64,000 nt of DNA from NCBI GenBank assembly GCA_977030845.1, contig OZ365109.1, positions 60,326,001 to 60,390,000 of the forward strand, in the 5' to 3' direction. The notes under the pieces are model-generated. The model worked only from the letters and a program-made list of their open reading frames with translations, searched no databases and had not been told where the DNA came from. Positions 40,801 to 61,800 of this stretch are shown here, in pieces. Both the position numbers and the translations under genes were made by a program. Position 1 is the stretch's first letter. Every line of letters starts with the position of its first letter. Origin of the DNA: Fimbriosthenelais zetlandica (lineage: Eukaryota).

Positions 40801-43800
40801 CAGGATCAGAATTTAGTAAGTCTCAAATGGAAATGGTTAATACAACAACCAAACAAATTATAAAAAGAACAAATATACAATTAAATGTCATTTTAATAGT
40901 GATCTCTTCTTTTTATAAAATAAAGGAATATAAAGGAACACTGTCGATACCATGGCGCCAATTGAGGTTTTCAAGATTCAAATTTTCAATGTTATGTTGT
41001 ATGCAGATTGTGCATGAATGATATGTGTATGCAGCTCATCATATCTTTCGTATTGAAATGTTCAATATTGCATATTATGAATGCATGAAATATATCTATA
41101 TAGGCATGCATGATATGTGTAAACAATATGTACATTAATTCGGAGAGCTAACGTATCTCCAGTGACTTTGTGATAGATATTAATGTATTATGGATTCAGT
41201 GTTATGAATCACGCTAGGTTCTAATTTGATGGGTTCCTTGGTTGACGATCCAAATACACTACATGACAATGCGCGTCGATACGTGAAAAATGCTATAGCA
41301 GTAATAGCCAGCGTGGACGGACACCTGACCATGGGTCAGAGACCTGCTCCATTATTATTAAAATAACTAAATAAATGAAAATCCCACTTTCAGGTGTCGA
41401 CGTAGGAGGTGGTGAGACAGGGGCAACAGGTGCAACAGGAGTCGCAGGCGTTGCAGGACGAACTGGTGCAACTGGACGCCCAGGTAATATTAGAGGACAA
41501 GCAAACATAATAATTATGTATAAGATTAAATGGTTCATCCATGATTACGCAGAAAATATTATGATGTCCTGATTGAGATATATTATATTCATATTAACAT
41601 AATGATTTGGATGGTTGATTGATCATGCTTGAGAGATAAAATTGATATGTTACTGATAGTTAATAATACTTTTTTAGGTTCTCCTGGTGGAGGCATTGGA
41701 CCTCAAGGTGCCACAGGAATTCGTGGTCCCATTGGATTTACTGGCCCACAAGGTCCTCCGGGACCAGCAGGTGGAGGTGGTGATGGAACTGGTGGTGGAC
41801 CTGGAAGGACTGGTGCATCAGGAGCAACAGGTGATATTGGGCCAACTGGTGCCACAGGTTCCATTGGACCAACCGGGCCCTCTGGTGTTACTGGTTCTAC
41901 TGGTCCAACAGGACCTACTGGAGCTACAGGAACTCGCGGACCTCTAGGTAGGACAGGTGCAACAGGCGTATCAGGAGTCCCAGGTACACCTGGTTCATCA
42001 GGTCAACCTGGCCCTGGTGGGAGAGATGGACGAGATGGAGCAACTGGGCGACCAGGTGCTATCGGCCCACCCGGTCCTCCAGGTCAAGGTACTAGTGGGG
42101 CCACCATACCAGGCCCAGAAGGAAGGACAGGTGCCACAGGAGCCCAAGGGAATTCAGGTCCGACAGGGGCAACTGGGACACAGGGACCCACAGGGCCAAC
42201 AGGAGCAACCGGTGGAAGAGGCCCAACTGGGCCAACTGGGGGTACTGGTAGTCGAGGAGGACCTGGACGTACAGGTGCTACTGGAACAGCAGGCCAGCCA
42301 GGTCCAGTTGGTTCAACAGGCATAAGAGGAGATCCTGGAAGAGATGGTCAACAAGGCTTTACTGGTTCCAGAGGTCCACCTGGTTTCCAGGGTGCCACTG
42401 GTTCACCTGGAATTGGTCAACCTGGATTACCTGGAGACCCAGGTAGGCCAGGAGGACCTGGGGGATTGGGGCCTTCTGGACCAACTGGAGGTACTGGAAC
42501 AACTGGGCCCACAGGACCAACAGGTGCAACTGGATCATCAGGACCAACTGGTCCCACTGGTGGTACTGGATCTACCGGCCCCCTTGGCAGGACAGGCGCG
42601 ACAGGTAAGCTAAAAAAACATCTACTTCAATCATCCCAAATACAGGCAGGATAAACATTGCCTTTCTGTAAATTCACAAGAACCTTTTCTTGATTAATAT
42701 ACAATCGAATGAAAAACAATGTCTCATATATACATTTTATACTCATTACAGGTCAAATGGGATCAACTGGTATTGCAGGAAGACCAGGTTCAACTGGAAC
42801 ATCAGGAGCAACAGGTCGCCCTGGTCCTCAAGGTCGTGATGGTTTCACTGGTGCCTCAGGTCCCCAAGGTCGAGACGGGTCTACAGGGCCAAGAGGATTC
42901 TCTGGAAATACAGGTGCAACTGGTACTGCTGGGTCACCAGGTACACCTGGAAGCCCTGGACCCGCTGGAGCCACTGGAAGGCAAGGTTCAGAAGGAAGAG
43001 ATGGACAACCAGGCACCCCAGGGACACCCGGCAGAGATGGACGAGATGGTGCAACAGGACCAATGGGTCCATCTGGTCCAACTGGAGGTACTGGAACAAC
43101 TGGGCCCACTGGACCAACTGGTGCAACAGGAACCACTGGGCCAACTGGTCCAACTGGAGGAACAGGACAAACTGGTCCTCTTGGAAGAACAGGTGCAACT
43201 GGACAGAGGGGTGCTACTGGTACAGCAGGCCCTTCAGGACCAGTAGGAGCAACAGGACAGCAAGGATCCAGAGGTCAACCAGGTTTTACTGGAGCTGCTG
43301 GCCCTGTAGGCCGTACAGGTGCCACAGGAGTTAGAGGCTTTCCAGGTTCAACTGGTCCTGATGGCAGACAAGGACAAACTGGGTCAACAGGTACAAGAGG
43401 TTTCACTGGGTCGACAGGTCCACTAGGTTTCACAGGTTCTACCGGTCCACTTGGACCACAAGGAAGACAAGGCAATGATGGAAATCCCGGAGGGCCAGGC
43501 CCTCAGGGCCCACGAGGGTCTGATGGACGGCCAGGCCCATCTGGCCCTACAGGTGGCACTGGATCAACTGGACCAACAGGTCCTACTGGTTCTACTGGAA
43601 CAACTGGTCCCACTGGACCAACTGGTGGAACTGGACCTAGAGGACCTGGTGGAAGGACAGGTGCAACAGGGACACAGGGACCACTTGGAGCAACAGGGGT
43701 TAGTGGACAACCTGGACCATCTGGATCAACTGGACCTCGTGGCCCTACTGGTGGCACAGGGTCAGTTGGCCCTCGAGGGCCAGAGGGTTCTCAAGGTAGA

Positions 43801-58800: not shown

Positions 58801-61800
58801 GGATTCACAGGTAGTACAGGTAACACTGGATCTACTGGACCCACTGGAAGGACTGGAGCCACTGGAAGCGCTGGTAACACAGGTGCTACTGGAAACGATG
58901 GAAGAACTGGTGCCACGGGAATAACTGGTCCAGCTGGAAGAGATGGATTTACAGGTTCAACAGGTCCTACTGGGCGTACAGGCGCTACTGGCAGAACAGG
59001 AGGAACTGGTGCCACTGGCTTCCCTGGACAAATTGGTAATACTGGTGCCACAGGTATTGCAGGACGTGATGGTTTCACAGGTGCCACTGGCCCAACCGGA
59101 CGTACAGGAGCCACTGGAGATATTGGACAGACAGGAGCAACTGGTCGAGATGGAAGAACTGGAGGAACTGGTGCTACTGGTGCCACAGGAAGAGCAGGTA
59201 TAACTGGAGCCACAGGAAGAGATGGGCGAACAGGTTCAACTGGTTCAACTGGATCAACTGGTCAACAAGGTAGAGATGGCTTCACTGGAGCCACAGGAAG
59301 AGATGGAAGAACTGGAGGAACTGGCTCCACAGGTTCTACTGGTCCTACAGGTAGAACTGGTGCCACTGGGTCAACTGGAGCAACAGGTCTTCCTGGTGAG
59401 AGTGGAACTACCGGTGCCACTGGGCCAACTGGTCGCACTGGTGCAACAGGATCCACAGGTTTAACAGGAAGGACAGGAGGTACTGGTCTCACAGGCCCCA
59501 CAGGTCGAACTGGAGCTACTGGAGCTACAGGTCTCCAAGGTAGATCTGGTGCTACTGGTACAACTGGTCCAGCTGGTCGTGATGGACGAACCGGAGCAAC
59601 TGGATCCACAGGTTTTACTGGAGCCATAGGTAAGATAATATATAATTCATGAGAATTTATTTGAGATAATCTAAATTTCAAAAACTCCAGCTATATTGGT
59701 ACTTACTTCCCGATATAAAGCAGAAACACAATAAAATTTGATATACTATTCTCGCACTCAATAAAGATGAAGGCTATTGTATAATACGTTATATCCATGC
59801 AGAAATGTTTCCCTACTATAATATACATTCCATATAGACTTCCTTACTACTAAATATGTATAATTATCCTGTTGGCACCTGGAAATGAAAGATCATCCTT
59901 TTGTAAATTTTTAGGTCCAACTGGAAGGACAGGTGCTACAGGATCGACAGGTGCCACTGGAAACCCTGGCAGATCAGGAGCCACAGGTTCAACAGGACGA
60001 GATGGACGTGATGGTGCCACAGGAGCCACTGGTATCGAAGGTCGATCTGGCAGCACTGGCGCTACAGGTTTTACTGGACTGACAGGAAGAACTGGCGGTA
60101 CAGGAAGTACTGGTAATACTGGAGTCACAGGACCAACAGGGCGTACTGGTGCTACAGGGAGAGTTGGTGCCACTGGTTTTGATGGACGCACTGGTGCCAC
60201 AGGATCGACTGGTGCCACCGGAATCCGTGGTCTAGATGGTGCTACGGGCCGTCAAGGTGACACTGGTTTTACTGGAGCTACTGGCACAGATGGACGAGAT
60301 GGTAGGACAGGTGGAACTGGAGCGACAGGCTGGACAGGTCCAGCAGGTCGTGAGGGTCGAACAGGAGCAACAGGAAGAGATGGTAGAGATGGTGACACTG
60401 GAGTAACTGGTCCCACAGGTAGAACTGGCGCAACTGGCCCAAGAGGATTCCAGGGTAACCAAGGTAACCCTGGTAGTGCTGGTTTCCCTGGACAGGATGG
60501 ACGCCAAGGAAATGATGGACGTACTGGGGCAACTGGTGCAAGTGGTTCAAATGGTTTAACTGGTGCAACAGGTGCAAGAGGATTTACTGGGGCTACTGGA
60601 CCTTTTGGTGCCACTGGAAATACTGGAAGAGGTGGACGCACTGGTGCAACAGGATCTTCCGGTTCATCAGGCAGAACAGGCTCTACAGGATCAACTGGTC
60701 CCACAGGAAGGACAGGAGCAACAGGATCAACTGGAGTAGGTGGTTTGACAGGTGCGACAGGAACCACAGGACCTAGTGGTCCGATTGGTTTCACTGGACC
60801 ATCAGGAAATAATGGCAGGACCGGCGCCACTGGTGTTCCTGGCCCAATAGGCCCCCCAGGACCAGGATTTGCTGGTGATTTGGCAGGTAAGCATAATTAC
60901 AAACTTTAAAATCAAAATTTCTATGCGATAATTTGTTTTTCATGAATTATTAATTCAACACCGAACGAACAGGATATCGGGTCCTATAATACTTATTTGT
61001 TCACTTGTTGCTTTAAAAAGTCACTCATATAATTTTATAAATAAGAATATGCACTTACTGAATACTATCAATCTTGGGAAGCTAATTTACTTGCTCATAA
61101 TACAATTCAGATGCAAGATGAATATCTACAGTATTCAGTAAATGGATATTTTATGCATGATAAAGACACTCGGAATAAAAATATATGGAATGTACCCATT
61201 TTGTCATCTATGTGACAAAATGGAAATGAACACTCACAGTTTCTCACTTCACAACTTTCCTGTCTGATATTTTCTTCTGCACATCTTTAGACTCCCTGAA
61301 TGGTAAGTGCTTAGAAACAAGGTGTGCCATAAAATATTTTAGGTTTAAAAAGGGGAATCGGTCTCAAGAAATCATACCTTTGTCAAAATAGATTAGATAA
61401 TCTTGCAAGGATTTCCTTTCCTGATTTTGTTTTCTTTCCTTGGAATCTTTCCTCCTATGTATATCAATTTTCGTTTTCAACTTTTGTGGAAATCATTTAT
61501 AATTTTCCTCCTGTCCCACTCTTGATGGAAACCATCAGTTGTACAGAACTTTGTATATTTATCATGACCTCCTTGCAAGATGCATTATATTATGTACTCA
61601 CGCACATTCTTTAGTAATTAGTAATAGTATAAACACAGTTAAATAGTTCTAAGTGGTTCGCCGAAAGTTTTTGTTTGAGAAGTCCATTATAATTGATTGA
61701 AACTTCGATTATATTTGTCGGGTAGTGTCCATGGATTGTTTTCTTTGTTAATATAAGGTTCATACTAATTTACGAAAAATACATTTTCGTGAGAATTAAG

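Follow-up and report, generated by a model that had tools for sequence, protein, structure and literature searches.

How is a collagen helix held together when the position that other animal collagens fill with 4-hydroxyproline is given over to threonine? This question is raised by a stretch of 64,000 nucleotides from Fimbriosthenelais zetlandica (contig OZ365109.1, positions 60,326,001 to 60,390,000 of the forward strand; hereafter the window), in which a gene on the + strand encodes a very long Gly-X-Y helix. An earlier note on this DNA, made from the letters alone, had claimed that Thr instead of Pro or hydroxyproline (Hyp) fills the Y position of the helix, and that the helix is stabilised by galactose on Thr, as in the cuticle collagen of the tubeworm Riftia pachyptila. 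As far as the encoded sequence tells, Thr has taken over the Y position held by 4-Hyp in other animal collagens. The interpretation offered in the note is, as a whole, partly supported.

Threonine at the Y position of the helix

On the + strand, a raw six-frame scan detected 24 Gly-X-Y tracts within 41411-60867, comprising 1,724 triplets with Thr at Y in 1,103 and Pro at Y in 88. The spliced helix model (41394-60886, +) joins 21 exons into a stop-free sequence of 5,150 amino acids (aa) and 1,709 triplets, the final 1,622 of which form one unbroken Gly-X-Y run. Its two ends, already given in the earlier note, are an acceptor and a donor splice site, respectively, and Pfam scores the helix exons as collagen repeats. 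Among the 1,709 triplets, the Y position is occupied by Thr (1,102, 64.5%), Gln (8.6%), Pro (89, 5.2%), Asp (4.2%), Arg (3.9%), and Ser (3.9%), and the X position mainly by Pro (414, 24.2%), Arg (17.6%), Ala (15.2%), and Ser (14.6%). Thr is thus found 1,102 times at Y against 51 times at X (odds ratio 59), and Pro 89 times at Y against 414 times at X (p = 5e-59). The full count confirmed that Thr, not Pro, dominates Y along the whole helix. The hand count of the exon at 47254-47838 proved to be exact, with 65 triplets, 46 of them with Thr and none with Pro at Y (scan tract 47253-47837), and 960 of the 1,622 triplets in the unbroken run (59%) belong to the seven kinds named as dominant ([21 protein letters not shown]). 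The order of 1,000 potential sugar sites per chain that had been estimated agrees with the ~1,100 Y-Thr counted here as candidate O-glycosylation sites.

Other features of the composition are equally pronounced. Imino acids (Pro) make up 9.8% of the helix, which contains a single Lys (in exon 17), no Cys, and no His. Arg is placed at X 300 times and at Y 67 times, a preference opposite to the pattern of other collagens. The motifs GPTGRTG and GRTGATG occur 64 and 85 times, respectively, and the net charge of the helix is about +235. The composition changes along the chain: from the N- to the C-terminus Y-Thr rises from 46% to ~75% while Y-Pro falls from 14% to ~3%, and X-Pro falls from 40% to 8% while X-Arg rises from 11% to 25%. 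The computed length of the helix is 1.47 µm (5,150 residues at 0.286 nm each). In the protein autocorrelation of the helix, the top periodicity was 12 residues (four triplets), with weaker peaks near 306 and 453-465.

A tract of this kind could be the product of recent repeat expansion or of assembly collapse. The helix coding sequence compared with itself gave ~62% similarity, a floor set by the GGN-NNN-ACN composition, with local matches of at most 84%, and its Thr codons are mixed (641 ACT and 465 ACA). The low self-similarity and the mixed Thr codons indicate that the pattern is spread over old, diverged sequence, and recent tandem amplification or a collapsed assembly was ruled out on these grounds. 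No N bases are present in the window.

Relatives of the gene and selection on threonine

Relatives of the helix were sought in two ways, with a helix exon as the query and with the second exon of the domain that precedes the helix (exon B in the list below). The helix exon matched only bacterial and metagenomic Thr-rich collagen-like proteins, which have on average 53% Thr at Y. Arg accounts for at most 6% of their X positions compared with 17.6% here, and because none of them possesses this Arg-at-X signature, we regard the matches as compositional only. The exon B query found a 74% identical open reading frame (ORF) on a 4 Mb contig of the ENA assembly ERZ25767047 and, in the siboglinid Lamellibrachia satsuma, two partial proteins with identities of 67% (LSAT2_028230) and 63%. 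At the L. satsuma locus (L003), a helix starts ~8 kb downstream with a like segment pattern and with Thr at 47.6% and Pro at 1.6% of the Y positions, and the gene is likely to be an orthologue. A homologue is hence present in a vestimentiferan tubeworm, a member of the group to which Riftia, the species with protein chemistry, also belongs. A third species (ENA ERZ21939214) has two near-identical exon-B loci on different contigs (L006 and L007), each with a reverse-transcriptase ORF ~7 kb downstream. No Gly-X-Y tract was found within 10 kb of loci L004, L006, and L007. Some of the best exon A relatives are on contigs that are not long enough to extend into a helix.

The ERZ25767047 contig was traced across four overlapping loci. 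Its helix exons follow the same series as here (182, 102, 50, 49, 46, 66, 62, 25, 46, 19, 55, 39, 22, 95, 89, 242, 139, 186, and 106 triplets), Thr fills 65.1% and Pro 4.6% of their Y positions, Pro 22.7% and Arg 17.6% of their X positions, and the composition gradient from the N- to the C-terminus matches exon by exon. The GPP-containing helix end and four EGF exons are also shared. The ungapped identity of helix exon 3 to its counterpart was 70.2%, compared with 45-54% in controls shifted by whole triplets. Since the exon series and the in-register identity agree, we conclude that the ERZ25767047 gene is the positional orthologue.

The comparison of these two species could be made without gaps over 15 exons of equal length, comprising 1,293 triplets. 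Identity was 100% for Gly, 50.1% for the X position, and 69.5% for the Y position. Thr at Y was kept in 778 of 864 cases (90.0%), whereas retention of the other Y residues was only 28%, or 120 of 429 (p = 2e-115, odds ratio 23); of 53 cases with Pro at Y, just 17 were retained, and 14 had changed to Thr. The third base was identical in 49.4% of the conserved Thr codons, where saturation would give 48.4% (a value derived from 13 of the 15 exons), and in 35.9% of the Gly codons, with 35.2% expected from codon usage. The silent sites are thus saturated, so that the retention of Thr at Y reflects purifying selection and not shared ancestry. Judged from these two sequences, selection holds Y-Thr almost as tightly as Gly, and Y-Pro drifts. 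The 90% retention at silent-site saturation also bears out the view of Thr as the residue equivalent to Hyp.

The exchange partners of Thr provided insight into the property under selection. The commonest partner was Ser, in 54 of 196 exchanges compared with 14.3% of the non-Thr Y residues (p = 1.7e-6), while Ala, which is one transition away from Thr, appeared 5 times against a background of 5.0%, which is not significant. The preference for Ser fits a need for the hydroxyl group, and would be expected of a sugar site and of a water-binding hydroxyl alike.

Gene structure and flanking domains

The sequence describes one gene on the + strand for a very large secreted collagen chain, with a signal peptide, six VWA domains, and a beta-sandwich domain ahead of the helix and four or more EGF-like exons behind it. 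The assignment to a single gene follows from the phases, because the exons are phase 1-1 with GT-AG introns, the sole exception being one phase-0 intron in the beta-sandwich domain. Each helix tract is flanked by an AG acceptor and a GT donor, and its Gly codon is split after the first base (G/GT, phase 1-1). The splice model rests on sequence and conservation, and the donor at 57844 was set by hand to G/gtaatat. The gene probably continues past the 3' end of the window. Its exons are as follows.

19859..20513, +, start-codon exon, its N-terminus resembling a signal peptide ([18 protein letters not shown]), with VWA domain 1 (ORF, phase-1 donor; Pfam VWA E=1e-6)
22227..22940, +, VWA domain 2 and a Pro/Thr/Gly-rich linker (Pfam VWA E=1.5e-11; phase-1 acceptor and donor; donor 22940 is the best candidate, uncertain)
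24196..24765, +, VWA domain 3 exon (Pfam VWA E=3e-18; phase 1-1)
26424..27005, +, VWA domain 4 exon (Pfam VWA E=6e-23; phase 1-1)
27799..28359, +, VWA domain 5 exon (Pfam VWA E=2e-23; phase 1-1)
29254..29835, +, VWA domain 6 exon (Pfam VWA E=3e-17; phase 1-1)
31268..31566, +, beta-sandwich domain exon A (phase 1 in, phase 0 out; no Pfam family)
40116..40338, +, beta-sandwich domain exon B (phase 0 in, phase 1 out; alignment A1 joins A and B seamlessly)
41394..41483, +, helix exon 1, short (tract scan, splice sites)
41678..42604, +, helix exon 2, with the sole interruptions of the Gly-X-Y register; Y=Thr ~42%, Y=Pro ~17% (tract scan, splice sites)
42752..44380, +, helix exon 3, 181 triplets, unbroken run already begun (tract scan, splice sites, orthologue)
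44549..45457, +, helix exon 4 (tract scan, splice sites, orthologue)
45580..46020, +, helix exon 5 (tract scan, splice sites, orthologue)
46147..46578, +, helix exon 6 (tract scan, splice sites, orthologue)
46682..47086, +, helix exon 7 (tract scan, splice sites, orthologue)
47254..47838, +, helix exon 8, 65 triplets (tract scan, splice sites)
48078..48626, +, helix exon 9 (tract scan, splice sites, orthologue)
48784..48999, +, helix exon 10 (tract scan, splice sites, orthologue)
49212..49616, +, helix exon 11 (tract scan, splice sites, orthologue)
49777..49938, +, helix exon 12 (tract scan, splice sites, orthologue)
50266..50751, +, helix exon 13 (tract scan, splice sites)
50999..51340, +, helix exon 14 (tract scan, splice sites, orthologue)
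51527..51715, +, helix exon 15 (tract scan, splice sites, orthologue)
51943..52788, +, helix exon 16 (tract scan, splice sites, orthologue)
52982..53773, +, helix exon 17, with the single Lys of the helix (tract scan, splice sites)
53931..56099, +, helix exon 18, ~241 triplets and thus the largest, 75% Thr at Y (tract scan, splice sites; Pfam Collagen E=5e-93)
56603..57844, +, helix exon 19 (tract scan, hand-set donor, orthologue)
57965..59629, +, helix exon 20 (tract scan, splice sites, orthologue)
59915..60886, +, helix exon 21, Pro-rich end (…GPIGPPGPG), then FAGDLA and a phase-1 donor (splice sites; orthologue end alike)
62236..62397, +, EGF-like exon 0, six Cys (unscored by Pfam; conserved in the orthologue; phase fits the last helix exon)
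62643..62816, +, EGF-like exon 1 (Pfam FXa_inhibition E=1e-5, under the family cut-off; phase 1-1; conserved in the orthologue)
63433..63567, +, EGF-like exon 2 (Pfam FXa_inhibition E=2e-8)
63666..63803, +, EGF-like exon 3 (Pfam FXa_inhibition E=8e-9; phase-1 donor)

The helix ends at 60840-60886 in a Pro-rich sequence with GPP, followed by the short hydrophobic and acidic tail FAGDLA; the corresponding tail in the orthologue (stitched L005-L010, 41070-41111) is FAADIT. This Pro-rich end beside the EGF domains may be a folding nucleation site. The 8.5 kb intron at 31567-40115, which is the sole phase-0 intron of the gene, contains several long ORFs without a Pfam match, and these may be remnants of mobile elements. 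Neither a glycosyltransferase-like ORF nor any other gene was found within the 64-kb window.

The two exons at 31268-31566 and 40116-40338 encode a domain of ~173 aa directly before the helix, exon B lying ~1 kb upstream of it. No Pfam family matched this domain, and 184 relatives were found in a library of 1.8 billion proteins; among them are a protein of Owenia fusiformis, membrane proteins of the single-pass type, and proteins in which the domain is fused to a collagen helix. Together with the gene architecture, the Owenia and L. satsuma relatives mark the source animal as a probable annelid. When one relative was modelled with alignment A1, the prediction was a confident all-beta sandwich (pLDDT 85). 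The fold matches among solved and predicted structures were weak and mixed, comprising phage fibre and capsid proteins, sugar-binding modules of esterases, TNF-like trimers, and unnamed invertebrate proteins; because of this, labels as a lectin or a trimerisation domain were rejected.

The helix also leaves its mark on the opposite strand. Long minus-strand ORFs of the type PVxPV are the mechanical antisense of the Gly-X-Thr pattern. At the ERZ25767047 locus L005 (13231-16059), several helix exons are covered by genes called in their open antisense frame, and for L. satsuma (L003) this gene family is annotated only as "partial hypothetical proteins" of 66-111 aa. No giant collagen was found in siboglinid gene predictions (PMC12403961). 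The antisense calls and the fragmentary annotation probably explain the lack of giant Thr-rich collagens in published siboglinid gene sets.

Stabilisation of the helix

Human collagens contain more than 20% imino acids (PMC3368898), and Pro and Hyp account for 33.5% of the Y positions of human fibrillar collagens (PMC8968730). At 9.8% imino acids, the helix described here needs another source of stability. Its one Lys and its lack of Cys leave no substrate for hydroxylysine-linked sugars and no usual cross-links, and the homologue in a vestimentiferan makes O-galactosylated Thr the most likely mechanism. In Riftia cuticle collagen, according to passages of PMC11766948 and PMC10141479 that cite Mann et al. 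1996, glycosylated Thr and not 4-Hyp dominates the stabilising positions and adds to the stability; the review PMC11766948 calls this Thr-based stabilisation species-specific. The relevant passage of PMC11923368 describes Ac-(Gly-Pro-Thr)10 as a random coil that becomes a triple helix once every Thr bears beta-galactose. By analogy with Riftia cuticle collagen, we consider it reasonably probable that the Thr residues at Y are O-galactosylated and are the main stabiliser of the helix. In such a protein, most of the Y-Thr, and also the small number of Y-Ser, would receive short O-linked galactose chains in the secretory pathway, and these chains, not Hyp, would stabilise the imino-poor helix. 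The N-terminal quarter, which is richer in Pro, and the C-terminal end with its GPP would act as conventional clamps or nucleation sites. That Thr is glycosylated, which sugar it bears, that this sugar stabilises the helix, and that the protein lies in the cuticle are all points that we infer from this analogy.

Several observations weigh against galactose as the stabiliser. Gly-Pro-Thr, the context of the peptide experiment cited above, accounts for only 170 of the 1,102 Thr triplets, most of the others being GAT, GST, GRT, or GFT. A chain of 5,000 residues with oligomerising flanks would need far less stability per triplet than a 30-mer. Collagens of Gram-positive bacteria have 48.3% Thr at Y, and most bacterial collagens are described as unglycosylated, with their stability attributed to hydration networks (PMC8968730). 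The cuticle collagen of the annelid Nereis also bears O-linked sugar on hydroxy amino acids, but the sugar is glucuronic acid-mannose instead of galactose (Spiro and Bhoyroo 1980, as given in a passage of PMC8143869). Finally, the domain in L. satsuma is only 63-67% identical, and the animal studied here is no close relative of the species that provided the chemistry. Because of the few Gly-Pro-Thr triplets, the distance from Riftia, and the support by analogy, explanations with bare Thr or with another sugar keep some probability.

If the Thr residues are functional but unmodified, their hydroxyl groups would order water around the helix, an effect that could suffice at a possibly low body temperature with the help of the long chain, its Pro-rich ends, and the Arg residues at X. 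The bacterial collagens with their proposed hydration networks are a precedent, the database matches of the helix exon are proteins of this kind, and the selection on Thr with its exchange for Ser would be met by a required hydroxyl no less than by a required sugar. Recombinant unglycosylated BclA of Bacillus anthracis reportedly still forms a triple helix; no example of a recombinant unglycosylated Thr-rich bacterial collagen was found in our literature search. In contrast, unglycosylated (Gly-Pro-Thr)10 fails to fold according to the passage cited above, the sole analysed animal collagen of such design has glycosylated Thr in the passages citing Mann et al. 1996, and the gene family occurs in a vestimentiferan. 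We therefore regard bare Thr as unlikely. The choice of another sugar, such as glucuronic acid-mannose or mucin-type GalNAc, would dispense with a dedicated galactosyltransferase, the known O-mannosyl or GalNAc transferases being sufficient. The Nereis sugar, the net charge of the chain, which acidic sugars could balance, and the distance of the animal from Riftia all favour this idea, whereas the sole analysed collagen with a Thr-dominated Y position carries galactose on Thr in the portions of PMC11923368 and PMC10141479 that treat it. The cuticle collagen of earthworms is likewise said to carry galactose on Thr and Ser. A sugar other than galactose thus seems rather improbable.

The sugars, if present, might instead serve mainly for hydration or lubrication, for the spacing of non-banded fibrils, or for protection from proteases and microbes, with the stability of the helix being secondary. 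One galactose on each Y-Thr would add ~179 kDa to a helix chain of 461 kDa, a mucin-like load, and with one Lys and no Cys the cohesion of the material would not come from the usual cross-links. On the other hand, the low imino content demands some replacement of Hyp, and the placement of Thr at Y but not at X would be needless for a purely mucin-like function; we consider such a role very unlikely as the principal one. The possibility that the Thr-rich collagen is bacterial or viral, by contamination or recent horizontal transfer, is suggested by the top database matches of the helix exon, which are bacterial or metagenomic. It is refuted by the gene structure and is of negligible probability: twenty GT-AG phase-1 introns interrupt the helix in frame with the VWA and EGF exons, another animal genome and L. 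satsuma share the exon structure, and the bacterial matches are without the Arg-at-X signature.

A Thr-for-hydroxyproline collagen among known collagens

The closest known system to the galactosylated Thr helix proposed here is Riftia cuticle collagen, which also has a Thr-dominated, Hyp-poor Y position and a low imino content, and whose vestimentiferan relative L. satsuma has a gene of the same design. The Riftia protein is known from peptide sequences and protein chemistry, and the present one from its gene and domains. The Riftia collagen is reportedly ~1.5 µm long, close to the 1.47 µm computed here, and is said to melt near 37 °C and to contain little Hyp, located at X. The protein was reportedly described by Mann et al. 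(1996, J Mol Biol 261:255), and the peptide models by Bann, Peyton and Bachinger (2000).

Other collagens resemble the present one in single features. The giant collagens of alvinellids and of the earthworm Eisenia share the very long, near-unbroken Gly-X-Y helix, but they are Pro-rich, with 22-33% Pro at Y and 33-40% at X (PMC12403961 Table 1), whereas the helix here has 5.2% and 24.2%, respectively, and 64.5% Thr at Y. In the bacterial and phage Thr-rich collagen-like proteins, such as BclA, Thr is also the commonest residue at Y, and proteins of this kind gave the best sequence matches to the helix. They are short and intron-less, are flanked by different domains, and have next to no Arg at X, unlike the present gene with its 20 helix introns and its VWA and EGF flanks. 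BclA is described in parts of PMC11923368 and PMC8968730 as glycosylated in its collagen-like region, unlike most bacterial collagens. The vertebrate VWA collagens (types VI, VII, XII, XIV, and similar) have VWA domains N-terminal to the helix, as here, but their helices are far shorter and Pro/Hyp-based and they are without such a beta-sandwich or EGF tail; the likeness noted here is one of shared domains. Nereis cuticle collagen reportedly has a high Hyp content and ordinary Thr. In the fibrillar collagens, which comprise types I-III, V, and XI and their invertebrate relatives, a helix of ~1,000 residues is followed by a COLFI C-propeptide, while here 5,150 residues are followed by EGF exons; no COLFI domain was matched in the window, the far C-terminus of the gene lying beyond it. 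The exons of fibrillar collagens begin on a complete Gly codon, and in this respect too the present gene differs, since every intron of its helix splits a Gly codon in phase 1.

The principle of Thr in place of Hyp has been known since 1996, and the locus adds a further member. In animals the evidence for it had come from one tubeworm protein, sequenced as peptides, and from synthetic peptides, and no description of a full Thr-rich collagen gene was found in the literature searched. The new elements are the complete helix, the large set of candidate sites, the domain architecture, the occurrence in at least three species, one of them a vestimentiferan, and the selection on Thr at Y. The dedicated Thr-O-galactosyltransferase pathway put forward in the earlier note is a reasonable expectation and not a finding, and no named enzyme of this activity was found in the literature searched. 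An old biochemical curiosity thereby becomes a gene family to be followed across the annelids and used as bait in the search for the transferase. It may be, and we hold this tentatively at a little short of an even chance, that collagens with Thr at Y form an old and separately maintained giant class in annelids and not a vent adaptation of one species. Such a class would have a code of its own, with Thr constrained nearly as strongly as Gly, Arg at X, and almost no Lys, would coexist in one genome with the giants of the Pro/Hyp type, and would be served by a putative animal Thr/Ser-O-glycosyltransferase. If this is true, the substrate gene described here would allow the transferase to be sought through co-expression.

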